Shown here: one piece after another, positions 577 through 60,802 of the stretch
How the letters are laid out: every line of letters begins with the position of its first letter
Position numbering within the stretch: position 1 is the first letter of the stretch
Origin: Anthoceros angustus
Taxonomy: Eukaryota; Plantae; Anthocerotophyta
DNA length: 64,000 bases
NCBI GenBank assembly: GCA_010909165.1
Contig: VJWM01000011.1
Location: 372,001-436,000 of the forward strand
Direction: 5' to 3'
Notes under the pieces: model-generated
Told to the model about the DNA's origin: nothing
Databases searched by the model: none
What the model saw: only the letters and a program-made list of their open reading frames with translations
Program-made: the position numbers and the translations under genes

Positions 577-1014
577 GTGTAAAAGTGCTCGTTCGCACTA
601 AGAATGAATCCAGAACGTAACGATCCACTGTTTCATAGCTAGACCCTGCCTCCCCCCTCCCCCTGAGACCGTTTTACGGCTAGACCCGACTAGGAAGTAG
701 GTTGATTGTCACGGGGCTCCTGCTTGTTCAAACATGCTCTGGACATGGCTGAAAAGTTTCAGGTCCCACACGATTTACTTGTACGGTTCTCATATTGTAC
801 CGATGGGTATTCTTTTCGAGAGTTGCATCGGAAGTCCTGACAGGTAGAAAATGCCATCTATACGTGCCCTCAGCAACATTTCCTTCGTAGGTGTCCGAGG
901 AAATACTTTCTCAGTATCTGATGCAGCCTAACACCGTTTGCTTTTATCATGGTCATGATGAATTATTTTATCCCTTTCTATCACACTTGAGCACTGGCTA
1001 CTCCTTCATTCTTC

Positions 1015-4000
1015 TCACGGTCGACCTTTACAACTGCAAGAACCAGTTGCGAATCGATGCACACGGTACCCATCCCTTACAACAATGTCTCTATGTTCAA
1101 GCTTTGACATGATCTCCGTGGAACTGTGGCAGTCACTGCACATGCGTAGATTCTTCGTGACCACTAGAGGTGTCCCACTTGGAGTGTTCAAGAGACCAAA
1201 CGCCAGAGCTAGCTTCTCAGCATGCCCACAAAGGACATCTTCCTTTTCAATCTCACACACTGGCTTCAACACCAACTTTGTGTGAGGTACGTGGCCTCCT
1301 TCCTGCTTCAGAAGTGCATTTGTGCTCTCTACCTTAAGTGCAACATCCTCTCTTCTTTCTCCCACCAAAAATCTATGTACCTGCTTATTCACCTCAATGG
1401 ACGCCACAGCAGGTTTCTTGTTAGCTCCTGCTATCTTTCTCTGTGTTTCAATCCTCTCTACATCAGTCCACCTACCTGCATCTGCATAGGCATAAGCCAT
1501 GAGCACATATCCCGATGCATGCTGAGGCTCCAGTCTAACAGCGCTTTCAAAACACCGAATCGCCCTCTCTAAATCCCCGTGATTTTTGCAGGAATTCAGC
1601 AAAGACCTCAATCCCACAACATTACCTTGGTCTTCACATGTTAATAGCATGTTCTCAGCCTCATCTAAATGGCCTGCACGCCCAAGAAGATCAATCATGC
1701 AATTGTAATGCTCAACAGTAGGTTTGATGCCATGCTGTTTAGCCATGGACCCAAAGAGCTTACGACCCTCGTCCACCAGTTCCTCATGACTGCATGCTAC
1801 TAAAAGGCAGGTAAAAGTAGCACCATCAGGCTGAATACCTGCAACTAACATCTCCTCAAAACAAGCTAGTGCTCTGTGACCTCATCACAAGTACCATACC
1901 CAGATATCAGGGCATTCCATGTCACCACATCCTTTGTGTTCATGCTGTCAAAACCTGGCGTGCATCTTCCAGTTCACCACATTTTGCATACATGTCCACC
2001 AGGCAGGTGCCCACCAGTTATCCAGCAGTCCTCTTTCACAATCTGAGTGCAGCTGCCTGCCTTCTGTAAGGCACCAGTGCTTGCACAGGCCTTCAGAAGG
2101 CAAGCAAAAGTAACATGGTCAGCCAAATCAGGCCCTGCTCCATTTGTCCATACACAAGCGCCTCTTGGCCAAGTCCTTGCTGTGCATACCCAGCAATCAG
2201 GGTGGTCCATGTCACCACATCTTTGTGGCCAAGCTGTCAAAACCTGGCGTGCATCTTCCAGTTCACCACATTTTGCATACATGTCCACCAGGCAGGTGCC
2301 CACCAGTATCCAGCAGTCCTCTTTCACAATCTGTGAGTGCAGCTGCCTGCCCTTCTGTAAGGCACCAGTGCTTGCACAGGCCTTCAGAAGGCAAGCAAAA
2401 GTAACATGGTCAGCCAAAATGAGGCCCTCCTGCTCCATTTGTCCATACAACAAGCGCCTCTTGGCGAGCCCTTGCTGTGCATACCCAGCAATCAGGGGTC
2501 CATGTCACCACATCCTTTGTGCCAAGCTGTCAAAACCTGGCGTGCATCTTCCAGTTCACCACATTTTGCATACATGTCCACCAGGCAGTTGCCCACCAGT
2601 ATCCAGCAGTCCTCTTTCACAATCTGTGAGTGCAGCTGCCTGCCCTTCTGTAAGGCACCAGTGCTTGCACAGGCCTTCAGAAGGCAAGCAAAAATAACAT
2701 GGTTAGCCAAAATCAGGCCCTCCTGCTCCATTTGTCCATACACACAAGTGCCTGTGAGCCCTTGCTGAGCATACCCAGCAATCAGGCGTCCATGTCACCA
2801 CATCCTTTGTGGCCAAGCTGTCAAAACCTGGCGTGCATCTTCCAGTTCACCACATTTTGCATACATGTCCACCAGGCAGTTGCCCACCAGTATGTCATCC
2901 AGCAGTCCTCTTTCACAATCAGAGTGCAGCTGCCTGCTGTAAGGCACCAGTGCTTGCACAGGCCTTCAGAAGGCAAGCAAAAGTAACATGGTCAGCCAAA
3001 ATGAGGCCCTCCTGCTCCATTTGTCCATACAGAACAAGCGCCTCTGGCCAAGTCCTTGCTGCATACCCAGCAATCAGGGCATTCCATGTCACCACATTCT
3101 TTGTGCCAAGCTGTCAAAACCTGGCGTGCATCTTCCAGTTCACCACATTTTGCATACATGTCCACCAGGCAGTTGCCAACACAACGTTATCCAGCAGTCC
3201 TCTTTCCACAATCTGAGTGCAGCTGCCTGCCCTTCTGTAAGGCACCAGTGCTTGCACAGGCCTTCAGAAGGCAAGCAAAAGTAACATGGTTAGCAGCCAA
3301 AATCAGGCCCTCCTGCTCCATTTGTCCATACACACAAGCGCCTCTGGTTGAGCCCTTGCTGTGCATACCCAGCAATCAGTCCATGTCACCACATCCTTTG
3401 AGGCCATGCTGTCAAAACCTGGCGTGCATCTTCCAGTTCACCACATTTTGCATACATGTCCACCAGGCAGTTGCCACCAGTATGTCATCCAGCAGTCCTC
3501 TTTCACAATCAGAGTGCAGCTGCCTGCCCTTCTGTAAGGCACCAGTGCTTGCACAGGCCTTCAAGCAAAAGTAACATGGTTAGCCAAAATCAGGCCCTCC
3601 TGCTCCATTTGTCCATACAGAACAAGCGCCTCTGGCCAAGTCCTTGCTGTGCATACCCAGCAATCAGGGTTCCATGTCACCACATCCTTTGTGGCCATGC
3701 TGTCAAAACCTGGCGTGCATCTTTCAGTTCCACATTTTGCATACATGTCCACCAGGCAGTGCCAACAAACAAGTTAGGAGGAATGCCACTGTGCAACACA
3801 TCACAGTGCACTTTTCTGCCAGATTCCAAGTCGGCGGCAAATGCACAAGCTTGAAGGGCAGCTACAAAGACGTGAGCATCCGCCTTCACTCCTGACCTAC
3901 GCATCTCATGGTACAGTTGTATGGCCTCATTAGGTTTCCCATGTTTAGCATGTGCAGAGATTATGGAAGACCACATGAAGGCATCTGGTTTGCCACCCTG

Positions 4001-5730: not shown

Positions 5731-6759
5731 AACTACCGTACACGAAAAAATAATACCCGACTTTTGTATATTCACACCTACATGTAAAATAATGTCGAGG
5801 ACACATTGTACCTGACATGTGAAATTTGAACAGACGTGGGACAAACATCAGTCCAGAAGGCCAACATCTTCGAAGTATGCGAATCTGAAAAAGCTTTTCA
5901 TTTCTCACACCTCTCATATCACCGAGCGTAGATGTCAAGCCAATGCTACTTGAAGCAATAGTGCGCATAATGCGGCATGTACTTCAATCCATGGGCTCTA
6001 AACAGGACTCAAAGGACAATCTAAGGTGACTAAGGCGGCCAAGTGCCCTGTTGCAGAAGTCCGGGGTGCGACAGTATTGACAGATCTGGGAAGGGGGCAC
6101 TAATTGATCAGATGTTCTTTACTGTGTATGGTGTGTACTAGCTTTATGGTTGAAGAATCCCAAATATTCACCTGCAATAGCAAGGATCAGGTTAAATCTG
6201 ATCAAGACGAGTCCAATAATCAGCAACCTAAATGTTTCACACATCCACCAACTCAGTGCACACCTCCTTTTATCTACACAATTCGATGGTCCAAAAGGTG
6301 CTACACTAAACATGGACAAGCAGGACACCGAGGTTACCACAAAAGTCTCCAGAAGAGAATGGACGACAGCAAGCTGCCTGACTTGAGACCTGGGCCCTGG
6401 CTGTCAGGCCAATTTGACACCACCACTAGCAGTGAGGCTTGTATCTCACATAAAGCCTTGCAGGGTCCTGACCGATGAAAGCTCCTGTCTCCAAATTTGG
6501 GGCCTGTTGAGAAGCGTGTCGGTTTGCTGATCCAAACCTTGATTAGGAAGCAAACTGTCATGACATAGGAACCGGCTTCACTTTCACTTCAACCAATATT
6601 GGCGTAACGCTAAGTCGACAAGCAGCTACATGCAGATCTCATTTCCAGATTGCATGACAAATAGCTGCGGCAGATTATACCTGAGATAAGGATTTTTCAA
6701 CTTTCAGGCGTCCACAAGCAAGTGCCCACGGCCTTTCTTTTTTATGTGTCCCCTTTCAC

Positions 6760-6960
6760 AATCGGAGAGTGCAGCTGCTTGGCACTCTGTCAGGCACAAG
6801 CACTTGCACACGCCATCAGAAGGCAAGAAAAAGTAATGCCGACAGCCACAACGAGGCCCTCCTGCTCCAGTTTTTCATACACAAATGCCTCTTGGCCGGG
6901 CCCAAAATCTGCTTACCCAGATATGCATAGGGTGGGCATGTTACCCAGATATGCCAAGGG
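6760..6960 (-). pseudogene. Degenerate PPR (L/P motif) relic
   Basis: gagtgcagctgcttggcactctgtcaggcacaagcacttgcacacgccatcagaaggcaag is a diverged version of the L-motif block of the flanking PPR genes. Confidence 0.6.
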
Positions 6961-7235
6961 GCGGGCGTGTTACCAGTAGTGGCAAACAGTCAAATATCCG
7001 GCATCTTACCGTTCGCTACATTTTGCCAATACACATGAGTTTATTGTACACGAGATCATGGCATTGGAGAATCATTGGACAGCTGATCCCGCCACCCTAA
7101 GCAACACCCTAACAGATGTGTGCGAGAAATGGAGTACCTTGATTGTGGAAAGCCTTGCCTCTGATCCGGTTGGACAAGCACATTCACCCGAGAAAGAAAG
7201 CAATTTTCTCTGGCTTTCACACTTCTTCATTCTTC

Positions 7236-10200
7236 TCATGGTCGACCCTTACAACTGCAAGAACCGGCCGTGAATCGATGCACACGATACCCATCTCTTA
7301 CAACAATGTCTCTCTGTTCAAGCTTTGACATGATCTCCGTGGAACTGTGGCAGTCACCACACATGCGTAGATTCTTCGTTACCACCAGAGGTGTTCCACT
7401 CGGAGTGTTCAAGAGACCAAACGCCAGAGCTAGCTTCTCAGCATGCCCACAAAGCACATCTTCCTTTTCCTTTTCACAAACTGGCTTCAATACCAACTTT
7501 GTGTGAGGTATGTGGCCTCCTTCCTGCTTCAGACGTGCATTCATGCTCTCTACCTTAAGCGCAATATCCTCCCTTCTTTCTCCCACCAAAAATCTATGTA
7601 CCTGCTTGTTCACCTCAATGGTCGCCACAGCAGGTTTCTTGTTAGCTCCTGCTATCATTCTCTGTGATTCAATCCTGTCTACATCAGCCCACCTACCAGC
7701 ATCTGCGTAGGCATTGGCCATGAGCACATATGCAGCCGCCCGCTGAGGTTCCAGTCTAACAAGGCTTTCAAAACACCGCATTGCCCTCTCAATATCCCCG
7801 TGACTTTTGCACGCATTCAGCATAGATGTCAATCCCACAACATTACTTTGGCCCTTGCATGAGAATAGCATGTTCTCTGCCTCATCTAAATGGCCTGCAC
7901 GACCAAGAAGATCAATCATGCAATTGTAATGCTCAGTAGAGGGTTTGATGCCATGCTGTTCAGCGATGGACCCAAAGACCTTACGACCCTCATCCACCAG
8001 TCCCTCATGACTGCATGCTACTAGTAGGCAAGTGAAAGTAGCACCATCAGGCCGCATACCAGCAACTAACATCTCCTCAAAACAAGCTAGTGCTTTGTGA
8101 CCATCATCACAAGTACCATACCCAGATATCAGGGCATTCCATGTCACCACATCCTTTGTGGCCATGCTGTCAAAAACCTGACGTGCATCTTTCAGTTCAC
8201 CACATTTTGCATACATGTCCACCAGGCAGTTGCCCAACACTACATTATCCAACAGTCCTCTTTCAACAATATGCGAGTGCAGCTGCCTGCCCTTCTGCAA
8301 GGCACCAGTGCTTGCACAGGCCTTAAGAAGGCAAGCAAAAGTAACATGGTTAGCCAAACTCAGGCCCTCCTGCTCCATTTGTCCATACAGAACAAGTGCC
8401 TCTTGGCCAAGCCCTTGCTCGGCATACCCAGCTATCAGGGCATTCCATGTCACCACATTCTTTGCGTTCATGCTGTCAAAAACCCGGTGTGCATCTTTCA
8501 GTTCACCACATTTTGAATACATGTCCACCAGGCAGGTGCCCAACAGTACATTACCCAGCACTCCTCTTTTGACAATCAGTGAGTGCAGCTGCCTGCCCTT
8601 CTGCAAGGCACCAGTGCTTGCACAGGCCTTCAGAAGGCAAGCAAAAGTAACATCATTAGCCAAAATGAGGCCCTCCTGCTCCATTTGTCCATACACAACA
8701 AGTGCCTCTTGGCCGAGCCCTTGCTCGGCATACCCGGCTATCAGGGCGGTCCATGTCACCACATTCTTTCTTTCCAAGCTGTCAAAAACCTGGCGGGCAT
8801 CTTCCAGTTCACCACATTTTGCGTACATGTCCACCAGGCAGGTGCCCACCACTGCGTTATCCATAAGTCCTCTTTCAACAATTCGTGAGTGCAGCTGCCT
8901 GCCCTTCTGTAAGGCACCAGTGCTTGCACAGGCCTTTAGAAGGCAAGCAAAAGTAACATGGTTAGCCAAAATCAGGCCTTCCTGCTCCATTTGTCCATAC
9001 ACAACAAGCGCCTCTTGGCCGAGTCCTTGCTGTGCATACCCAGCAATCAGGGCATTCCATGTCACCACATCCTTTGTGGCCATGCTGTCAAAACCTGGCG
9101 TGCATCTTCCAGTTCACCACATTTTGCATACATGTCCACCAGGCAGGTGCCCAACAGTACATTACCCAGCACTCCTCTTTTGACAATCAGTGAGTGCAGC
9201 TGCCCTTCTGTAAGGCACCAGTGCTTGCACAGGCCTTCAGAAGGCAAGCAAAAGTAACATCATTAGCCAAAATCAGGCCCTCCTGCTCCATTTGTCCATA
9301 CAAGCGCCTCTTGGCGAGCCCTTGCTGTGCATACCCAGCAATCAGGGTCCATGTCACCACATCCTTTGTGGCCATGCTGTCAAAACCTGGCGGGCATCTT
9401 CCAGTTCACCACATTTTGCGTACATGTCCACCAGGCAGGTGCCCACCACTGCGTTATCCATAAGTCCTCTTTCAACAATTCGTGAGTGCAGCTGCCTGCC
9501 CTTCTGTAAGGCGCCAGTGCTTGCACAGGCCTTTAGAAGGCAAGTAAAAGTTACATGGTTAGCCAATATCAGGCCTTCCCGCTCCATTAGTCCATACACA
9601 ACAAGTGCCTCATGTCCGAGACCTTGTTGGGAATACCCAGCAATCAGCACGGTCCATGTCACCACATCCTTTTCGGCCATGCTGTCAAAAACCCGGCGTG
9701 CATCTTTCATTTCGCCACATTTTGCATACATGTCCACTAGGCAGTTGCCAACAAACAAGTTAGTAGGAATACCACTCTGCACTACATCACAGTGCACTTT
9801 TCTGCCGGCTTCCAAGTCGGCGGCTAATGCACAAGCTTGAAGGGCAGCTACAAAGACGTGAGCATCCGCCTTCACTCCTGACCTACGCATCTCATGGTAC
9901 AGTTGTACGGCCTCGTTAGGTTTCTCATGTTTGGCGTATGCGGAGATTATGGAAGACCACATGAAGGCATCTGGCTTGCCCACCCTGGTGAGCACATCCA
10001 TGGCCTCCTCTAGCCTGCCTCCACATGCATACATGCGCAAGATATGGTTCCCCAGGTATGCATTTGTCTCGTACCCAAGTTTGACAGCTATATCATGAAC
10101 TCGTCGCCCTATAACCAAATCCTTCTTAGCTGTACACAGTTTCAGCACAGTGCAAAACAGAGACTGAGAAATAGCAGATTCTGCCTGAGCCAGAGCTTCC

Positions 10201-16660: not shown

Positions 16661-18064
16661 TCAACCCAGAGTCTGGATGGCTCGATCAAACGCTGACTCC
16701 GCATGTGAAGCACGCTGGACAAGGACGTGATCTGGGTGGGATGCCTTCAATTGACTGCAACAAAAAAGGGTAGCACACATGAGAAATTCATATACAGAAA
16801 CCTTGGGGCCCCTGGCATTCAACCGGCATGTGTTCTGGTGTTGTTGGAACAAACCTGAGATATCGGCTTGTAGGCTTTCCCAAATGAAGACCACATACGA
16901 TCAGATTTGCAAGGGTGTCTGGATTTTTGGAATCCTGCATACAACAGAACAGCTGCCACCCGTTCAATTTACTGGGGTTTGGGGAAGGAAGGCAGGTGAA
17001 GTGCTACTGAAGCGAGAGCCTTGCCTTGTTCAGAGCATCCAGAAGCGTCTGCTCAGCCTCCTCGAAGTGGCCCATATGCATGTTGCAGACAGCACTGCCG
17101 TTCATGATGGGAACGGTGAGGGCATACTTCTCGCACAGCTCCTGAAAAATGTAGAACGCTTCCTGTATCTTGGACCCGCCCTACATGTTCCATAAGCAGT
17201 GCGCAAGTCAGGTGAAACCCGAGCACCTTGCTTCCAAACTGACGCCAGCCAGGGGTGAAAACCCACCACCGCCAGATTGAGCCAGGCATTTGCTAACTGC
17301 GTCAAGGTATGGTCTTCATCAATCTGCTGCATAATCTTGAGCTGCTTTTCAGCAAAATCCGTCCGGTACAGCTTGAGATACAGCTGCAGGTTGAGAGCAT
17401 TTCTGCACAAACAAGGCCAGGCCTCCCTCCAATCAGATCAGATCACCACAAGCCAACAAGACTCTCCAAGGTCAGCCCACTCACAGTTCCAGCGTTCCTC
17501 CGCCATGCGTCAGCTTCAGAGCAGCGTTGTAGTCTTGCTCGCCGGCATAGATAGTCCCAGCAATCAGCAGAAGCGTGGGGTTCGTGGCAATTGCAGCATC
17601 CGCTAGCCACTCTCGCAGGCTCTCCAGCGCCTTGGCCTGCACGTACAAACCAAAAACCCTAAAACTGGCCATCCCTCCTTTCCGCATCCAATCACACCCA
17701 TTCGACCCCAGGAGCCAGACACCATACCCTCTTGTCTCCCCCCAACAGATACTGCGCTAGGAGCTTCACCGCTTGCAGCGCGGTGGGAGCTGAGATGCTG
17801 ATCTCATCGATGACTAGCTGCAAACACAGCGCAAGCGTCAGAATCCATCATCCCACCATGTGACCCAACCCGGAAGCCCATCTGGTGTACCTGGTAGCTC
17901 CCGAGGGCCACATAGGAGCGATAGACGAACACATCCCTCTCCACGCTCTCCGCCTCCGTCAAGCCACCACCATGGGACTCGTTGATGGCTGCCTGGTACG
18001 CCCCCAGGTAGAAGTAGTTGCGCAGCGAGAAGAGCGCATCCGGCCCAGCCCCGGCCCCGCTCAT
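16661..18064 (-). CDS. COPE: Coatomer subunit epsilon (multi-exon)
   Basis: [29 protein letters not shown]...[17 protein letters not shown]; [18 protein letters not shown]; C-terminal [31 protein letters not shown]. Confidence 0.93.
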
Positions 18065-48790: not shown

Positions 48791-49344
48791 GTTCGCCTAG
48801 GTGTTTTCAATTTTGAACTTGTTGTCTTTTGCCACCATGCGCGCCACGATGGCCATAAGAGAGCGGGAAGCGTCTTCCATCATGTGCAGGAAGCGGCCTC
48901 CTTCCCACAGCTCTCCCTTGGGAGCCTCCGCCACTCCAGCCTCTCCCACCTCCCTCCTGTTCACTGAGTCGTGAAACGCGACTCGAGTCGTGAAGCTCCA
49001 CTTTGAGACGTGAAGCAAAGCTCCGTTTCTAGCTCCCGCCCGCCCCGCCCTGCTGCATGCGATCGGCTCGCATTTTCTTCTCCCCCTCGTCGGACCATGC
49101 TGCTCTGCTCTGCTTTGCTCTGCTTTTGCTCACCCTGTAAGAGCTGGTTGAGCGGGGCTGGAGGAAATTAAATGCATGGCATTGGAGCTGCCGTACTTGC
49201 TCGGGTTGGTGTGTGGTGCTTTTCGGTCACCATCAGCTGCTGCTGCTGGTTTGTGAGTGGCCGGATCTTATAATTTCTGTCCGCTCAAAGGCATCTGGCT
49301 GCGGCTTGGGCTGCCGGGAGGATTGTGAGGCCATTTCTTCCAGC

Positions 49345-52300
49345 ATGAGTTCGGTTTCAGGGCAAGAAGCGAGAGCCGGAGTGGCGGAAAGATGGATATC
49401 GTCGCAGGCCGTGAATCCCACGGGCTCGCAATCTCCGTCGCCTAGGCAGTCGGAGACTTCGTCTGGCAGAGCTCCGGTGTGGATGGGGAATTCTCCGGCT
49501 GACGGCGGCGCAGAGCCTCCCCAGCCGTCTCTCGCTGTTTCCGCTCCTTCTTCGTCCTACAGTTTTGCCCCTTCGGTAGGAGAGAGCAGCGCCGGGAGCC
49601 GCACTGAGCCTGTGTCTTACTCTGGGTTTCTGGGGGCTTCCCATCTAGCATCTTCGTCCACATCTCACAATGTGGCTGCTTTTCCGGCCTCGTCCCCTGT
49701 CTATTCCTTTCCCAGGTCTGCTGTGCCTGCAGTTGTGCCACAGTCTTCTTTTCACTTGCCATCTCCGCAAATCGTTGGCTTGAATTATCTTCAGATCCCG
49801 TCGCAGAGTTCCGTGCTGGCGGGGGCACATAGTGGTATCGGTAGGCTGAGTCTTTTTCCGCGGGAGCCGGTGAAATCCGCAGCTGCGGCTGATGCATCCA
49901 GAACGTTCTCCGGATCGCCGGAGAATTTCTACCCCTCGGCAGGGAATGAGAAGCTGTATGAGGCCTACAATGATCTGCACAGTCTTGCTCAGGATTTCCA
50001 CAAGCCTTTCGACGCCCCGGCTATTCTGGTAGTTGGTCATCAGACTGATGGGAAAAGCGCGTTGGTGGAAGCGCTCATGGGTTTCCAGTTCAACCATGTT
50101 GGCGGGGGGACCAAGACAAGAAGGCCAATCACGCTTCACATGAAGTATAATGCATCGTGTGCGGAACCGGCATGTTTCCTGGTGACAGAAGATCGCCCGC
50201 CCAAGGAGGAAGAGAAGAGCTTGGAGGAGCTTCAGGTTGGTTTCCTTCTATCATCTTGCTGGCATGCAATTGTTCACTATGCATGTTTGGTTGACGTTCC
50301 CTGACGAGATGCTTTGGCGTGTAGGCCTACATTGAAGCGGAGAACATGAGATTGGAGCGTGAAGCGTGTCAATTCTGGGCAAAGGAGATTGTGGTGAAGA
50401 TTGAGTACAAGTACTGCCCCAATCTCACCATCATTGATACTCCTGGCCTTATTGCTGCTGCACCAGGCCGCAAAAATCAATCGCTGCAGGTTGTTCTTCA
50501 CTTTCTCTTTATGCTCCAAAATCTTTCTGTAGCATCCTGTGTTGGTGCTCTTGCACTTGCCAGACGGTGTAGGCTGACTGTCTGCACCTCCAGACTCAAG
50601 GACGAGCAGTAGAGGCACTGGTGCGCTCAAAAATGCAGCAGAAAGAGTTCATTATCCTGTGTCTCGAAGACTGCAGTGATTGGAGTAATGCAACAACAAG
50701 GCGGGTTGTCATGCAAGTAAGTCCAAGATCCCACTTCTTTCCCGAAGCTCCATTTCCACTGTGAGACCTGAAGCAGGAGCTTATTTGTGCTCGGTGGCCT
50801 GGCTTTGTTCGTCGGCAGATGGACCCAGACCTTTCTAGGACTGTGGTGGTTTCAACAAAGTTAGACACACGTATTCCTCAGTTTGCAAGGCCTGCAGACG
50901 TTGAGTTGTTCTTACGTCCACCTCCTCGGTTGTTGGATGGGAACCTTCTCGGAGAGACACCATTTTTCACTTCCGTGCCATCTGGAAGGGTTGGCAGTAC
51001 ACGGGATGCTGTGTACAGATCAAATGATCACTTTAGAGAGGTATCGTCTTTTCGCCACTGCTGATCCTTCAACACTCCATCCTCATTGGTGTTGAGAAAG
51101 ATGAAGTCATCTTGGTCTGATATGTGTTGAACAGGCTGTGGCATTAAGAGAGTCGCAAGACGTTGCTTCATTGGAAGAGAAACTAGATCGACCCCTTGTG
51201 AAGGAAGAGCGTAGCCATGTGGGAGTAAGCAGGCTACGGTGGTTTCTTGAGCAGCTCTTGCAATGGAGGTTGGGCCTCGCTTGTGTTTATGCGATTGCTT
51301 GGCTGAAACCTGTTTGCTACACACCATGCAGTCAGTAGGTGTACATTCTGCATCCCCAAGCTTATTTGTTGTGATATTGGGGCCTCGGCTGTGAATTTCT
51401 CAGGTACATGGAAAGTGTTCCAACAATCGTGCCGTTACTGGATAAGGAGTACCGCAACGTTACCATCAAATTGCAGCAGACTATTCAGGAGCTTGGGTAC
51501 GCTTGTTATGCCTCTGCTTCCTTTCCTTTCAAGGAACATCTGCACGGATGACTGCTCTAATCTTATGCCTCTTCAGAAATCTGGATGAAACGAAGCTGAA
51601 AGAACGAGGGCGTGTATTCAGAGACTCCTTCTTGGCAAAGGTATTTGTTTTGCAAGAAAGAAGAAATTCCCTCACCTCGATCTGTCCGTTGTGTTAGTAC
51701 TGTTCCCAGACTTGATTCCTGTTTATTGTTCCCATTGTTCAGCTTTCCTTGCTTCTGAAAGGGACGGTAGTAGCACCACCAGAAAAATTCGGTGAGTGAA
51801 AATTGCTGTGTACCATCTTCCATCAGCGAGTGATCCTGGCTGGAGTTCCAACTTTGCTGGCCTCAAATGCCGTCCTGTTCTTAGCCAGTCTTTGTTTTTC
51901 AGGAGAAACTCTTCAAGACGAACGGGTGCATGGTGGCGCCTTCGTAGGTTCGGATGGTCAGCAAATGCCCTACAAACACATGCCGGTAAGCTAGCTGAGC
52001 AATGCCAGTGCGAACTTTGAAAATCGCAAATCCACTCACACAAGGGTCATGCCATAATCTGCTGACTAAGTGGACTCTTCCCTTAGAATGCCACGATGCG
52101 GCTGTACGGAGGTGCCCAATACCACCGGGCTATGGCGGAGTTCCGTTTCATTGTGGGAGGAGTGAAATGTCCGGCTATCAGCAGAGAGGAGATAGTGAAT
52201 GCCTGTGGAGTGGAAGATATTCATGACGGAACTAACTACTTCAGGTACTTGCTTTACGCTTACCTCAATACGCCAAGCATTCGCATGTGGATACTAACCC

Positions 52301-53766
52301 GGAGTCCTATTGACAGAACTGCGTGTGTAATCGCTGTGGCCAAAGCCCGGGATGTCTTCGAGCCGTTCTTGCATCAGGTGCACCAGTGAGCTATGCTGTA
52401 TTTCTTAAGCGGTTTGACAAGTATCGTAGCCTGGATCTAAACGATGTTTGCGGTATGCAGCTAGGATTTCGGTTATCGCATGTTCTGCGGCGGCTTCTTC
52501 CCATAGCGCTGTACCTCCTGCAGGTTGCTCTCCGACTGAAACTCGTTATGGACAATTTTTATATACCTTGTGTTTGGTATCTCTTATCGTTGAATCGTGT
52601 CTAAATGTCCTTCCAACCCTTGGACATGTCAGAGGGATGGAGCGTATCGGCATGATATGTTCATGAAGCGTGTCTCAACTGCTTTTCACATATTTGTCGA
52701 GGCAACAGAGCGTGCGTGCAGAGAGAAGTAAGAGGGCTGCAGTGATGAATGCCTACAGTCGGACTTGCCAAATTATCGGTCAAGAACTAAATGGTGGAGT
52801 CTGTCACGCAGATGCATGGAGGATCTTTTAAGTACAACGCGGTACGTCACATGGTCGCTGCACAATAAGGTTAGCCGTCCCTCTGTAATCCACATTTCTC
52901 CATTTGCTGGAAATCGGCTTGCATCGACAGCTTGACAAGAGTACAGCGTCTTACCCGTTCAATCCGTACTGTCTGTGTTGACTGCAGAATCGGTCAGGTC
53001 TTCGGCAATTTTTGGATACGTTTTCAGCTCGAGAGCAGCCTGCGACATCCAATACAAGTCCTGTCTGTTCGGAAACCGGTGCTGCTGCTGGGAATAGCAA
53101 CAAGCAAGACAACAAAAGCCGACAAGATGTGAAGCCTCAGCCCATTTCCGCAGGAGAAGCGGGCACTGTCAGCAGTCAAACCACGCAAGGGCGATTGGTT
53201 GACCTCCTGGAGAGCACATTGTGGAACAGAAGACTGGCTCCGTCATCTGAAGAAATCGTGAATGCTCTTGTCGCACAAATCTTCGAAGGCATCAGGGACC
53301 ACTTTGTGGCTGCAGCGGAATTGAAAGTGAGCTTTGTTTTGTGTAGGACTCTGCCAGAAGCATGAGTCTCCTTTTCCTCCTATGCCTACTAATCAGTGGC
53401 ATCCTGGTGCAGTTCAACTGCTTCTTTCTGATGCCCGTGGTGGATAAGTTCCCCACGTTGCTGCGAGAGGACTTGGAGTCCGCCTTCGACGAGGACATCG
53501 ACAACGTCTTCGACGTCGCCCAAGCCAGGCGAACTCTGGAGCAACAGAAGGGTGACCTGGAATTCGAACTTCGAAGGGTAAGTCCATCATCCCTTCTCCC
53601 GCTGCGGCTGCCAGCCTTCATGTTTGCGTTGCCTCACATGCTTTGGTTGCTCCAGGTTGAGAGGTTACAGGAGAAGTTCGCCAGCATTCACCACAACCTC
53701 AGCACCTCCCAACCGGTATCTCTACCTTCTAAGGACTCGTCCGAGGATACGCTGTTTGCTGCTTAG
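49345..53766 (+). CDS. ARC5: Chloroplast/peroxisome division dynamin ARC5 / DRP5B (multi-exon)
   Basis: LYEAYNDLHSLAQDFHKPFDAPAILVVGHQTDGKSALVEALMGFQFNHVGGGTKTRRPITLHMKY; CPNLTIIDTPGL; MRLYGGAQYHRAMAEFRF; LWNRRLAPSSE; FNCFFLMPVVDK. All match Arabidopsis ARC5 closely. Confidence 0.93.
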
Positions 53767-53811: not shown

Positions 53812-56170
53812 CTGGACAGAAGGATCGCATGCGACATGCTTTTGTACACTACTTTAGATAGGCTGAAGCCTCGCAGGACGAGTCCCTATTACCTCATCAG
53901 AAGACTCAAATTTGTGCTTCTGAATGGATTGTATGCAGTAAAGGGAAACTGTGGGCCCATACTGGGCCCGTCTGTCTGTGCTCTGCAATTTGTCAGAAAT
54001 GTGTGGCACGTGACATGTGGGTAGCAGGGAGCTTGGTTTCGAAGAAAAACAACTGGAATGGCTTGGCTAGGGATTTTATTGGCGCCCAATGGGACCCAAA
54101 GCTGACCCGGTCTTAGCTCGGGACCATCGACCTTGTTTGCGAGAGAACGCGGAAGCCTCGCGGAGCTCTGCTACAGAGGCCTTGGGCCCTGCCTGGTCAC
54201 GCTCTTGTTCTGCTGTGGCAAAACAGCAGCAGCCCCAAGTCCCCAACTTGGTTGTCTGCTGCGTTTGGGGACAATGGGCGAGGATCCAACTCATAGCCCA
54301 CAGCTGTCGCAGGAGCACAGCAGGAGTCCCTGAGAAGATCCTTTCTTGCTCTGTGGGTGACATGTTTGTGGCGGAATTCAGGCAGTCTGATCTGGACGCT
54401 CGCACAATCAGGCCACCAGCAGTATGATGGCGTCCTTCTTCAAATCGGCCAAAAATAAGGTGAAATCAAAATTTCAAGGGCATTCCTCCAAGGACGACTT
54501 GCATATCAGGCGAGGTGGAGATGGTGGTGGCTTTGGGAGGCAGGCAGCCGTAGCGGCACCGGGAAGTCCATTGAGGGCATCTTTCTTCCCTGCCGCCGGG
54601 GAGGTGCTGCTGTGGCAGATCGGAAGGCCTTCTCCGACGCTGGTATTAACATGGCGGATTTCCGCAGTGCGGAGGAGTTCAACCTTGCGGCTATGCGTTT
54701 GCAGAGGGAGAGTGAGGGAAAAGCCGGAGCTCTGGTGTCGTACACCGACAAGACCCATGTGCATTCCCCAGGTGCCACCATGGCGATGGAGGCGAGCTCA
54801 GATGCAGGGACCGCTCCTCCCAGGGATGAGTCTGTCATGGGTATGCACCCAAATCCTCCCCTCCCTCCTGTAGGTGTGAGGGTGGGCTCTGGGCTCACTC
54901 CAAAGGGACTGGCCTTCTCCATCTCACTCGTTTGAGTTCCTGTTGCAGGAAACACGTCCTCAGCCTGGATACCATCCAGTCTGCCCTGGACAGAAGGATC
55001 GCATGCGACATGCTTTTGTACACTACTTTAGATAGGCTGAAGCCTCGCAGGACGAGTCCCTATTACCTCATCAGAAGACTCAAATTTGTGCTTCTGAATG
55101 GATTGTATGCAGTAAAGGAAACTGTGGGCCCATACTGGGCCCGTCTGTCTGTGCTCTGCAATTTGTCAGAAATGTGTGGCACGTGACATGTGGGTAGCAG
55201 GGAGCTTGGTTTCGAAGAAAAACAACTGGAATGGCTTGGCTAGGGATTTTATTGGCGCCCAATGGGACCCAAAGCTGACCCGGTCTTAGCTCGGGACCAT
55301 CGACCTTGTTTGCGAGAGAACGCGGAAGCCTCGCGGAGGCTCTGCTACAGAGGCCTTGGGCCCTGCCTGGTCACGCTCTTGTTCTGCTGTGGCAAAACAG
55401 CAGCAGCCCCAAGTCCCCAACTTGGTTGTCTGCTGCGTTTGGGGACAATGGGCGAGGATCCAACTCATAGCCCACAGCTGTCGCAGGAGCACAGCAGGAG
55501 TCCCTGAGAAGATCCTTTCTTGCTCTGTGGGTGACATGTTTGTGGCGGAATTCAGGCAGTCTGATCTGGACGCTCGCACAATCAGGCCACCAGCAGTATG
55601 ATGGCGTCCTTCTTCAAATCGGCCAAAAATAAGGTGAAATCAAAATTTCAAGGGCATTCCTCCAAGGACGACTTGCATATCAGGCGAGGTGGAGATGGTG
55701 GTGGCTTTGGGAGGCAAGGGGCAGCCGTAGCGGCACCGGGAAGTCCATTGAGGGCATCTTTCTTCCCTGCCGCCGGGGGAGGTGCTGCTGTGGCAGATCG
55801 GAAGGCCTTCTCCGACGCTGGTATTAACATGGCGGATTTCCGCAGTGCGGAGGAGTTCAACCTTGCGGCTATGCGTTTGCAGAGGGAGAGTGAGGGAAAA
55901 GCCGGAGCTCTGGTGTCGTACACCGACAAGACCCATGTGCATTCCCCAGGTGCCACCATGGCGATGGAGGCGAGCTCAGATGCAGGGACCGCTCCTCCCA
56001 GGGATGAGTCTGTCATGGGTATGCACCCAAATCCTCCCCTCCCTCCTGTAGGTGTGAGGGTGGGCTCTGGGCTCACTCCAAAGGGACTGGCCTTCTCCAT
56101 CTCACTCGTTTGAGTTCCTGTTGCAGGGAAACACGTCCTCAGCCTGGATACCATCCAGTCTGCCCTGGAC
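53812..56170. repeat. Direct tandem duplication, ~1.17 kb unit x2
   Basis: ctggacagaaggatcgcatgcgacatgc at 53812 and 54986. The units are near identical and differ mainly by 1-bp indels; CTGGACA recurs at 56165. Confidence 0.92.
54424..54992 (+). pseudogene. Truncated 5' copy (exon 1 + start of exon 2) of the IRG-like GTPase gene
   Basis: MMASFFKSAKNKVKSKF... identical start to 55598, frameshifted, ends at the duplication junction. Confidence 0.8.
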
Positions 56171-57295
56171 AAGAGTTGCTTCAATGTGGCTGTGCTGGGC
56201 CGCGATGGGTGTGGCAAGTCGTCTCTGATCAATGCCTTGTCTGGCCTCAGAGACAATGAGCCAGGTAAACTCCTCAGCAGGTTGATTGCAGCAGGATCCA
56301 GGAAGGGTTGGTGAGAGTTCCCCTGGGCTTACCTTTGCTGCTGATGTTCAGGGGCAGCTCCAGTGCGAGAGATGAAGCACCTAGCTATCCATCCGCAGTT
56401 CATCTTCCGCATGCCCAATCGTAGGTATCCTGACTTCATATTCTATGACATTCCTGGAGCGGACCGGTTCGACACAGAAGCATCTGCCCTGGGGTTGGTG
56501 CCCAAGCTCAAGCCCTTCGATTGCATTCTACTGGTGTCAGCAGAAAGGTTCTTGGACATGGAGCTGATACTTGCCAGAGAGTTCGCCGCAGACGCTACAA
56601 CAGAATGCCTGCTGGTGAGAACCCAGGCGGACGTAGCTGCCACGGCCCTGTCCGAGGCCTCCTCTATCTCCATGAAGGAGGCCGGAGACCAGCTTCGCGA
56701 ACTTGTGGAGGCCGAGATCCGCTCTAGGTTCACCAGGCCATCCGACGACGCAGCCTTGCCCAGCGTCTACTTCATGTCATCCAGGTTCCAGGCCAAGGCT
56801 GCCAGGACGTATCAGCGTGCCATCAGCCAGAGGGGTCGCTTCGACAAGACCTTGGAGAAGATGGATGAAGATGCGGTGCAGAGCAGGCTGCAGGAGATAT
56901 ACGATGCGTTTCAGAGACGGAAGGTGGCAGCCAGAGTTCCCCGTGCCAAGGCAACACCCCAGGGAAGCAGACAAGGGCAAGGAGCGGATTCTGGCCTAGT
57001 GCACCAGCCCAAGGACGTCTCACCCGTCCGTCCCTTGCCAACTAAAGGTCGGTGGCAGCCAAACCCTGGAGTGCAGGAGGTCCCCCAGAAACTTACCACT
57101 ATCGCTGAGAGCTCAGTCGATAAGGAGCAAGCACCTCAAACCAGAGCCCTGCCCTTTCATTCTGGACAAAACTCCTCTAGCACCGTCATTGTGAAAATGG
57201 GGTCGGAAGTGAAGATGCCCATCAACAAGACCGTCAAGTCCATTTCCGTATCTGTATCTCAGGAAGCTGCAACCCTCCAGGTCATTTATGCTTGA
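55598..57295 (+). CDS. P-loop GTPase resembling immunity-related GTPases (IRG / IIGP, p47 family); predicted exons 55598-56051, 56127-56264, 56352-57295 (~511 aa)
   Basis: Spliced translation: FNVAVLGRDGCGKSSLINALSGLRDNEPGAAPV...YPDFIFYDIPG...PFDCILLVSAERFLDMELILAREF...LLVRTQAD...VYFMSSR. GT-AG junctions are phase-compatible (both phase 1). Confidence 0.75.
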
Positions 57296-57599
57296 TCCAT
57301 ACTGTATCTACTGCCAAGTCTCAGTCTGTTGGGTGCAAGGTTCACATTTATCTGCGTCACCCTAATGGTCTGTCGAGAAGGAGGGTACATGCCGCATTCC
57401 ATGACTGGCAAATGCTCAAAGGCATCCATCTCGTTTCTGTTTGTTCCCCGTGTAAGAGTGTAAGCGAAGAAACATATATCCACTGCGCGGGATGGGATTT
57501 CTTCATATCCTTCATTCACATGATACGTATCCAGTACATCTTCGTTCTCTGTCTAGTGTACAACTGAACGGACTTCAGATTAAACGCCTGTACAAAGCA

Positions 57600-57790
57600 C
57601 AGGCTCCCAAGTACAGTAGTACAAAACAGGTTCCCAAGTAGAACAAGGCAAGAGGTCCCCAAGTAGTATGAAACAAGATATTCCCACGTAGTACAAAACT
57701 AAAGGTTCCCAAGTAGCCTACATAAAGGCTTTCACTTGGTTGTTCCCCGAAGAGTACAAAACAAAGGTTCCCAAGTATAAACACCAAGTG
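57600..57790. repeat. Irregular short tandem repeats with core (AAAC/AAAG)GGTTCCCAAGTA
   Basis: Core ggttcccaagta or variants recur about 6-7 times at ~22-30 bp spacing. Confidence 0.6.
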
Positions 57791-59981: not shown

Positions 59982-60802
59982 ATGGAGTGTGTGTTCGGCC
60001 TAGTGGGGGATGGCTTTGCGTTGCTGGTGGCAGACACTTCTGCAGTGCAGAGCATAGTGGTGCAGAAGACAACAGAAGACAAGATTCTGGCGCTAGACTC
60101 CTCTAAGCTGCTTGCCACTACCGGCGAGAATGGAGACAGAGTGCAATTCTCGGAGTACATCCAGAAGAACATCCTTCTCTACCAGTACTGCAACGCCACG
60201 CCTCTTTCCACGGCCGCTGCTGCAAATTTCACCAGAAATCAGCTGGCTCAGGCTCTTCGCAAGGTAGGTCGGAAAGCTTTTCAGACGCAAAAGAAGCTGT
60301 GCTTTGCAAGTATCTGCATTGATCTGGAATTTGCTTCGCGCTTGTGCAGAGTCCCTATTTCGTGAACATGATGATCGCAGGCTGGGATAAGGATGCAGGC
60401 CCGTCTCTTTACTACTTGGATTACATCGCCACGCTCCATAAATTGGAGAAAGGAGCCTTGGGATATGGTACGGATTGTGGTTTTCTGAGGGTTTAGGACA
60501 GCTGGTTCGTCAAGATTTTGAAATCTGAGATTGATGTTTGCTGCTTGCTGCTTGCAGCTGCGTACTTCATGCTTTCGTTGATGGATAAGTACTACAAGCC
60601 AAACTTGTCTCTCAAGGAGGCGCTGGAGCTGGTGGATAAGTGCATCGCTGAAATCAAGACCCGCCTCATTGCTGCTCCACCGAACTTTGTTATCAAGATT
60701 GTGGACAAAGACGGTGCACGACTTCTGGAATGGCGAAAGACTGTTGAAGACAACACGGGGCCGAGCACTCCTTTGCCTGTTGCCGTAGAAGCGCAAGGGT
60801 AA
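59982..60802 (+). CDS. PBD1: 20S proteasome subunit beta type-2 (3 exons)
   Basis: MECVFGLVGDGFALLVADTSAVQSIVVQK...GDRVQFSEYIQKN...LSTAAAANFTRNQLAQALRK / SPYFVNMMIAGWDKDAGPSLYYLDYIATLHK / PPNFVIKIVDKDGAR. Confidence 0.95.

Follow-up and report, generated by a model that had tools for sequence, protein, structure and literature searches.

A 64,000-nucleotide (nt) stretch of contig VJWM01000011.1 from the hornwort Anthoceros angustus (the window, within which all coordinates below are counted) contains a three-exon gene of ~500 codons at 55598-57295 on the forward strand, encoding a protein whose G domain is, by sequence comparison and structural modelling, of the IRG (IIGP) type. We consider it likely that this resident, spliced hornwort gene specifies a ~500-residue 'short IRG' G-domain protein lying outside the vertebrate p47 group, which would act as a nucleotide-binding, poorly hydrolysing switch or scaffold. 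What is new is that a short G domain of the IRG type is combined with extensions specific to hornworts and with degenerate catalytic motifs; the domain itself is already widespread. In our search of the literature, no paper dealt with such GTPases in hornworts or in any other land plant, and no characterised plant member was found.

Assignment of the G domain

All searches were made with the exons taken separately. Pfam places the IIGP family (PF05049, cut-off 24 bits) first for both exons that encode the G domain, with 23.7 bits for exon 2 (model positions 26-61) and 15.9 bits for exon 3, which lacks the P-loop (model positions 83-183), and the two matches are colinear. Among other families, AIG1 reaches E 0.29 with exon 2 and has no match in exon 3, and MMR_HSR1 covers the P-loop of exon 2 only; the sole other Pfam match of exon 3, ASXH (E 0.049), is regarded as a chance match to a helical stretch of low complexity. 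NCBIfam yielded generic P-loop matches for exon 2 and nothing for exons 1 and 3. The orthologue from Nothoceros aenigmaticus (P0001), described below, scores 31.4 bits with IIGP and is thus above the cut-off; MMR_HSR1 also passes its own cut-off there, with 24.3 bits.

Comparison of exon 3 with the PDB by phmmer gave IRG chains as the nine best matches (IIGP1C/GM4951 and Irga6, E 0.05-0.5), with PDFIFYDIPG, FDCILLVSAERF and LLVRTQAD aligned to PNVVFWDLPG, YDFFIIISATRF and YFVRTQVD of IIGP1C. A HMMER search of the same exon against 1.84 billion representative proteins (E up to 0.001) matched ten proteins, namely two hornwort entries, the fern protein MCO5609024.1, four transcripts and one protein each from a tardigrade, a fish and a lizard; the last three are annotated as interferon-inducible GTPases and the fern protein as hypothetical only. 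Nine of these ten pass the IIGP cut-off (31 to 862 bits), eight as clear members and the ninth just passing, and the tenth is a fragment without the P-loop. Profile comparison extends the match: against a profile of the fern-type clade, hhalign aligned exon 3 over 173 colinear columns, which begin at switch I and reach the closing helix (98.8%, E 1.4e-16), and placed exon 2 just upstream of it (97.1%). A profile made from the fern-type proteins, P0009, one tardigrade domain and one hornwort row (alignment A2) in turn reaches Irga6 at E 7e-39, the best non-IRG protein being Era at 6e-8. Judged from these alignments, the resemblance to IRG proteins exceeds chance. A word-index protein search gave no match for exon 3 and returned two hornwort entries only for the full-length Nothoceros isoform (P0011), and a language-model feature search of the Atlas placed bacterial MMR_HSR1 clusters nearest to exon 3, with scores <0.9 that serve as a lead only.

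The structural models lead to the same family. AlphaFold2 models of the Nothoceros orthologue and of window exon 3 have a predicted local distance difference test score (pLDDT) of ~90 over the G domain and over the G-domain part, respectively. With the orthologue model, the top 38 Foldseek matches in the PDB are GM4951, Irga6, Irgb6 and Irgb10 (best E 7e-11), the first non-IRG family being Toc34 at 4e-7; with the exon 3 model, the top 27 are all IRG chains. VIA-align superposed the orthologue model on Irga6 residues 68-258 with Z 19.4 and a root-mean-square deviation of 2.9 Å over 184 residues at 24% identity, followed by mitofusin (Z 16.2) and YsxC/EngB (15.8). By shape, the nearest cluster in the ESM Atlas is a 233-residue fungal IIGP family (template modelling score 0.76 by cluster length), followed by IRGs of chordates and by some bacterial GTPases that are IIGP-positive. 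On sequence and model evidence, the G domain is of the IRG/IIGP type and not of the MMR_HSR1, Toc34 or AIG1 type. Best profile or structure matches to those three families, or an unspliced and unexpressed gene, had been named in advance by the preliminary description of this locus as speaking against an IRG protein; what was found are IRG best matches and, as described below, spliced transcripts.

The resemblance is limited to the G domain and one helix. Pfam IIGP is covered at positions 26-183 of 375, the structural match is confined to Irga6 68-258, and neither the orthologue model nor the exon 3 model contains an N- or C-terminal helical domain; downstream of the G domain, the models have a single helix, then a disordered linker and finally three short strands. 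The N-terminal 140-residue region contains conserved short blocks and one predicted helix. An N-terminal myristoylation signal (MGxxxS) is absent, the protein beginning MMASFF. An amphipathic helix was considered for the conserved N-terminal 18 residues and is unsupported, the hydrophobic moment of 0.35-0.39 being equalled by ~10% of shuffles. A homodimer prediction with two copies of the orthologue G domain (residues 140-400) scored 0.00 and counts neither way. By the models, then, the likeness to IRG proteins does not go beyond the G domain and one helix, and a full p47 IRG architecture is ruled out.

Gene structure and expression

That the gene is intron-containing, with three phase-compatible exons, had been proposed from the sequence and is borne out by transcripts. 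Both introns run from GT to AG, both junctions are in phase 1 and the codon split at each of them is GGG (Gly). Contigs from public runs were aligned to 55200-57700; that of run X1 has zero differences from the window, and those of X2, X16 and X20, which are from other organisms, are ~95% identical. All four lack precisely the 108 nt and the 87 nt that lie between the predicted borders and, because genomic DNA would retain the introns, they represent spliced transcripts: the IRG-type gene of Anthoceros is transcribed and spliced. Parts of the transcript are present in 23 runs from 7 studies, a spread that is compatible with steady (constitutive) expression, the contigs themselves giving no expression levels. 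The features of the gene and its surroundings are collected in Table 1. The upstream open reading frame (uORF), whose stop codon overlaps the main ATG, may serve to control translation.

Table 1. Features of the IRG-type gene and its surroundings, in window coordinates
Feature	Position	Strand	Remarks
Dynamin-family gene, multi-exon	49213-53766	+	Directly upstream; Dynamin_N 43.6 bits on first long open reading frame
Upstream tandem copy	53812..54992	+	Promoter, 5' untranslated region (UTR), exon 1, intron 1 and first 45 nt of exon 2; unit ~1.18 kb
5'UTR	55314..55597	+	~284 nt; contigs of runs X1 and X2 both begin at 55314
uORF within 5'UTR	55537-55601	+	ATG at 55537; TGA 55599-55601 overlaps main ATG 55598-55600; read from sequence
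Exon 1	55598..56018	+	N-terminal region, 140 codons; hornwort-specific
Intron 1	56019..56126	+	108 nt, GT..AG, phase 1; skipped in contigs of four runs
Exon 2	56127..56264	+	Helix before strand 1, strand 1, P-loop (G1)
Intron 2	56265..56351	+	87 nt, GT..AG, phase 1; in-frame TGA 56312-56314; skipped in contigs of four runs
Exon 3	56352..57295	+	Stop TGA at 57293-57295
Exon 3, first part	56352..56953	+	Remaining IRG-type G domain and closing helix with conserved MDE motif (56861-56869)
Switch I region	56354..56416	+	4-residue insertion, zero Ser/Thr; from translation and alignments
G3 DIPG (in YDIPG)	56447-56458	+	DxxG intact; from exon 3 translation
G4 TQAD	56621-56632	+	Asp kept, Lys replaced by Gln; (N/T)KxD absent
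Linker, predicted disordered	56954..57169	+	pLDDT <50 in exon 3 model
C-terminal motif, three predicted strands, then stop	57170..57295	+	SSSTVxVKxGSEVKMPINxxVKSxSxSVS...; pLDDT 70-80; hornwort-specific
3'UTR	57296..57700 and ~0.8 kb beyond	+	X1 contig continues past 57700
Proteasome subunit exon	59982-60362	+	PF00227, 49.8 bits; downstream of the IRG-type gene

Divergence was read from the ~95% identical relatives. It amounts to 3% in exon 2, to 4.9% in exon 3, to ~6-7% in exon 1 and the 5'UTR and, with indels besides, to at least 10% in the 3'UTR. Over both UTRs the range is 7-10% plus indels, and exons 2 and 3 (3-5%) diverge at one half to one third of that rate. The sole indels in the coding region are a compensating pair at 57116/57118; the frame check in these relatives covers frame-shifting indels alone. 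The interspecies differences listed for exon 1 fall at nine third, seven second and four first codon positions, with little third-position bias.

Two further observations concern the transcripts. The 3'UTR contains a 25-nt unit, AGTAGTACAAAACAAGAGGTTCCCA, in ~4 copies at 57615-57716 with looser copies to ~57870, and in this repeat zone the contigs of related species have diverged, with indels. Run X20 (organism D) also holds, as contig record 8, a ~2-kb transcript that matches the gene only at 55598-55626 and 57206-57264, which suggests a diverged paralogue sharing the conserved N- and C-terminal motifs.

Conservation among hornworts and genomic setting

Orthologues were found in two further hornwort sources. 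The transcript from N. aenigmaticus, taken from EukProt (P0001; full isoform P0011, 517 residues), is 46-58% identical per exon and its full isoform shares with the Anthoceros protein the N-terminal MMASFFKSA(K/R)NKVK, the P-loop context and the C-terminal motif. A second orthologue (P0002) was read from L001, a genomic contig of 9.3 kb, and has both introns at positions and in phases identical to those of the window gene. An intact frame of ~500 codons is present in the window gene, the L001 gene and the Nothoceros transcript. Exon 1, which has no Pfam or NCBIfam family match, contains the conserved blocks MASFFKSAKxKVK, a predicted helix with EEFNxAAMRxQ, and SYTDKTxVHSP, all kept in P0011 and L001. 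The C-terminal three-strand motif is kept in P0011, P0002 and L001, and an exhaustive search with exon 3 among 1.84 billion proteins found no relatives of it outside hornworts.

From these orthologues and their matching introns, from a shared neighbour encoding coatomer-epsilon and from the genes on either side, it follows that the gene is a resident hornwort nuclear gene kept across distant hornworts and not a contaminant. The coatomer-epsilon gene is found at 16661-18049 (-) in the window and at 5770-7388 (+) in L001, with 70-88% protein identity between the two. The flanking genes in the window are a dynamin-family gene and a gene with a proteasome subunit exon (Table 1); the exon peptides of the former resemble, as we presume, the plastid-division dynamin ARC5/DRP5B. 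As to spacing, the coatomer-epsilon gene is ~1 kb from the IRG-like gene in L001; in the window it is 38 kb away and inverted, with retroelements between. L001 also has, at 816-1280 (-) upstream of the orthologue, a gene with a plant-type Stress-antifung (PF01657) domain, with no counterpart adjoining the window gene.

Directly upstream, 53812-54992 repeats the beginning of the gene and matches 54986-56171 without a single substitution, the only differences being 6-7 single-base gaps in G runs; its copy of exon 1 is frameshifted. From its sequence, this tandem copy would be either a very recent duplication or an assembly artefact.

Relationship to known IRG proteins

A maximum-likelihood tree was built from 35 G-domain pieces over 250 columns, a small sample chosen by similarity to the query. 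In this tree, the three hornwort rows are recovered as one clade (100/100), with a long stem (1.74), and are grouped with the fern protein P0003 and the transcripts P0004, P0006 and P0010 (88/94), separate from a tardigrade and fungal group and from the IRGs of fish, lizard and coral. Forcing the hornworts together with these animal IRGs makes the tree 29.5 log-likelihood units worse (p-AU 6e-5, approximately unbiased (AU) test). By this phylogeny, the protein belongs to the 'short IRG' branch, and a clade with vertebrate IRGs is rejected. The named plants in the branch are the hornworts and the fern; P0004, P0006 and P0010 are tied to Logan runs SRR2103685, SRR32617110 and SRR33208241.

The nearest short IRG-type GTPases outside hornworts are the Adiantum nelumboides protein MCO5609024.1 (P0003) and the same three transcripts, at 25-30% identity, with tardigrade, Suillus and rotifer proteins as more distant relatives. 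They have in common with the hornwort protein a G domain closed by one helix with the MDE motif. Short IRG-type proteins, on the other hand, have 220-310 residues, keep the switch I Thr and TKxD and score 84-110 bits with PF05049, whereas the hornwort protein has ~500 residues and degenerate motifs; those that are full length (P0003, P0006 and P0010) begin MG, which the hornwort protein does not.

With Irga6/IIGP1, GM4951/IIGP1C, Irgb6 and Irgb10, the hornwort protein shares the predicted G-domain fold, a GKS-type G1 and a DxPG-type G3, as well as the helix and strand before the P-loop (xxALDKSCFNVAVLG versus ISDALKEIDSSVLNVAVTG) and the FDxxxxxSAxRF and VRTxxD blocks. Unlike Irga6, it has no N-terminal three-helix unit, no C-terminal helical domain and no MG start; unlike Irga6 and its kin, it has a 4-residue insertion in a switch I without Ser or Thr, TQAD in place of TKxD, and N- and C-terminal regions of its own. 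Vertebrate IRGs are under interferon control, which is inapplicable to plants. The proposal of an IRG/p47-like protein thus stands for the G domain and one helix and fails for the rest, since the p47 helical domains are absent and the animal-IRG clade is rejected. The motifs on which that proposal drew (GRDGCGKS, G-AAP, YDIPG, FDCILLVSAERF and LVRTQAD) were all found where they had been placed, and its reading of the switch I threonines and the G4 Lys as replaced was confirmed.

Nucleotide-binding motifs and proposed mechanism

Exon 2 encodes NVAVLGRDGCGKSSLINALSGLRDNEP, which includes the G1 motif GRDGCGKS at 56198-56221, a P-loop of the 'GKS' class (GxxxxGKS), and the G-AAP motif spans junction 2. 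Besides the intact G3, exon 3 encodes FDCILLVSAERF and LVRTQAD, the latter with the altered G4. From GAAP to strand 2 (PVREMKHLAIHPQFIFRMP), switch I has no Ser or Thr and thus no equivalent of Irga6 T102 or of T108, the G2 residue. The G2 threonine is therefore lost however the insertion is aligned; the fern-type relatives retain E-T-T in this region. The Nothoceros and L001 orthologues, on the other hand, have DIPA at G3, NKAD at G4 and a Ser or Thr near strand 2. As read from these sequences, different hornwort lineages have lost different canonical residues but all retain the reading frame, both introns, the core of the G domain and the motifs at either end.

In TRAFAC GTPases, it is the Thr of switch I that binds Mg2+ and detects the gamma-phosphate; the Lys of G4 packs against the guanine base. 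Given these roles, binding is probably kept, with hydrolysis and the switch impaired. We propose that the hornwort G domain gained the ~140-residue N-terminal region, the 4-residue switch I insertion and a disordered tail ending in the three-strand motif. Guanine nucleotide would still be bound, the P-loop, the G3 DxxG and the G4 Asp being intact, and GTP would be hydrolysed slowly or not at all, with switch movement impaired for lack of a switch I hydroxyl and through the Lys-to-Gln change in G4. The protein would then serve as a nucleotide-loaded adaptor or scaffold that recruits partners via its conserved N- and C-terminal motifs, and not as a membrane-attacking effector; membrane attack of the Irga6 kind is unlikely because the helical domains are absent. 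The analysis thus shows the structure and expression of the gene, its family and fold, the loss of the helical domains and the state of the motifs, whereas nucleotide binding without turnover, a scaffold role and any cellular process are inferred. A model for such a role is provided by IRGM (of the 'GMS' regulators) and IRGQ (a 'quasi-GTPase'), vertebrate IRGs with non-canonical nucleotide motifs that act as regulators or adaptors; unlike the hornwort protein, they keep the helical domain, and the likeness is one of altered motifs and proposed role.

Several points weigh against this interpretation. Each exon alone scores below the Pfam IIGP cut-off, the VIA-align margin over other TRAFAC GTPases is only ~3 Z units, and the best structural evidence consists of a model of the orthologue and a model of a fragment that lacks the P-loop. 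The group forced together in the AU test was named after the tree had been seen. The putative loss of activity is read from motifs only, and an unusual G2 or G4 motif does not always prevent a GTPase from hydrolysing. IRG-like GTPases of a chlorarachniophyte are active (PMC10927497).

Alternative explanations

One alternative is a generic TRAFAC GTPase, similar to EngB/YsxC, Toc34/AIG1 or dynamin-like proteins, with IRG matches that stem from shared P-loop features. The passing MMR_HSR1 score of the orthologue (24.3 bits), Z values of 15-16 for EngB and mitofusin and the bacterial MMR_HSR1 clusters nearest to exon 3 among the Atlas features (scores <0.9) would all fit such an explanation, but the P-loop-free exon 3 still matches IIGP in Pfam, IRG chains in the PDB and IIGP members in the library of 1.84 billion proteins. 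Furthermore, the clade profile leaves a 30-order gap in E-value between IRG and the next family, and Toc34 is four orders weaker in Foldseek; Toc34/AIG1 and EngB/YsxC (MMR_HSR1) share the common TRAFAC fold (Z 14-16, Foldseek E 4e-7 and weaker) and fall below IRG in every test. We therefore give very little credence to a generic TRAFAC GTPase, which is already largely refuted. Nor do we find it at all probable that the gene is in decay, a transcribed relic drifting towards a pseudogene in which the motif changes are damage. Decay would account for the different canonical motifs lost per hornwort lineage, for the little third-position bias of the differences in exon 1 and for the broken partial copy upstream; however, the ~500-codon frame is intact in the window, L001 and Nothoceros, no frame-shifting indels occur in the ~95% relatives, the intron positions, the N- and C-terminal motifs and the G-domain core are conserved, and the UTRs have changed faster than exons 2 and 3.

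Two readings accept the IRG-type G domain and differ from a poorly hydrolysing scaffold in function. An active effector of cell-autonomous defence or symbiosis control, which would hydrolyse GTP and oligomerise, Irga6-like, on membranes round Nostoc colonies or pathogens, would be in keeping with the IRG-type G domain, the GKS P-loop and the intact DxxG, and hornworts do host cyanobacteria. We regard it as unlikely: the helical domains, which in Irga6 mediate membrane binding and oligomer contacts, are absent, as is a myristoylation signal; the G2 hydroxyl residue and the G4 Lys are lost; transcript contigs occur in 23 runs (7 studies) for which no challenge is known, a pattern compatible with constitutive expression; and Nostoc sits between hornwort cells, not in a vacuole. 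Still more doubtful, in our view, is a plastid- or pyrenoid-associated IRG-like GTPase whose N-terminal region would serve in targeting. The analogy is with PPAP3, PPAP6 and PPAP8 of chlorarachniophytes, GTPases of the pyrenoid matrix that combine an IRG-like G domain with a lineage-specific N-terminus (PMC10927497), and the N-terminus of the hornwort protein has many Ser, Ala and Lys but few acidic residues. Its first 18 residues, however, are strongly conserved across distant hornworts, which is unusual for transit peptides, and the hornwort pyrenoid studies examined mention no GTPase. By their description, the PPAPs carry plastid-targeting signals and have a C-terminal G domain and, in PPAP8, measured GTPase activity (PMC10927497).

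Origin and significance

The preliminary description had offered ancient inheritance or transfer from fungi or bacteria as the source of the gene. For transfer, no bacterial or fungal donor was found: there is no bacterial protein among the exon 3 matches in 1.84 billion proteins at E up to 0.001, and a pattern scan of prokaryotic genomes (alignment A5) gave 98 pattern matches, 0 of them confirmed by tblastn, by a method that reaches close relatives only and is weak for distant ones. A recent bacterial origin thus finds no support in these sequence searches. The gene may have come about by vertical descent with losses, the other part of that proposal, or by a hornwort-fern transfer; the neochrome photoreceptor is a known case of horizontal transfer between hornworts and ferns. 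More speculatively, and with low confidence, we suggest that the hornwort and fern IRG-type branch might be the relic of an ancient eukaryotic set of defence-type GTPases that was lost by seed plants, or might have been passed horizontally, and that it might have been rebuilt in hornworts as a nucleotide-locked scaffold with new terminal motifs for a hornwort-specific process, such as symbiosis, plastid or pyrenoid function, or immunity.

IIGP-type domains are already known from fungi, rotifers, tardigrades and bacteria, which limits the surprise of finding one here. A stable, expressed and conserved hornwort IRG-type gene with its nearest relative in a fern nevertheless extends the range over which the family is known. 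IRG proteins belong to the textbook defence systems of vertebrates and, as Anthoceros is transformable, the gene offers a tractable case for studying what the domain does beyond animal immunity. The lineage-specific loss of catalytic motifs in an otherwise conserved protein may, furthermore, provide a natural experiment on how a GTPase becomes a non-catalytic switch.

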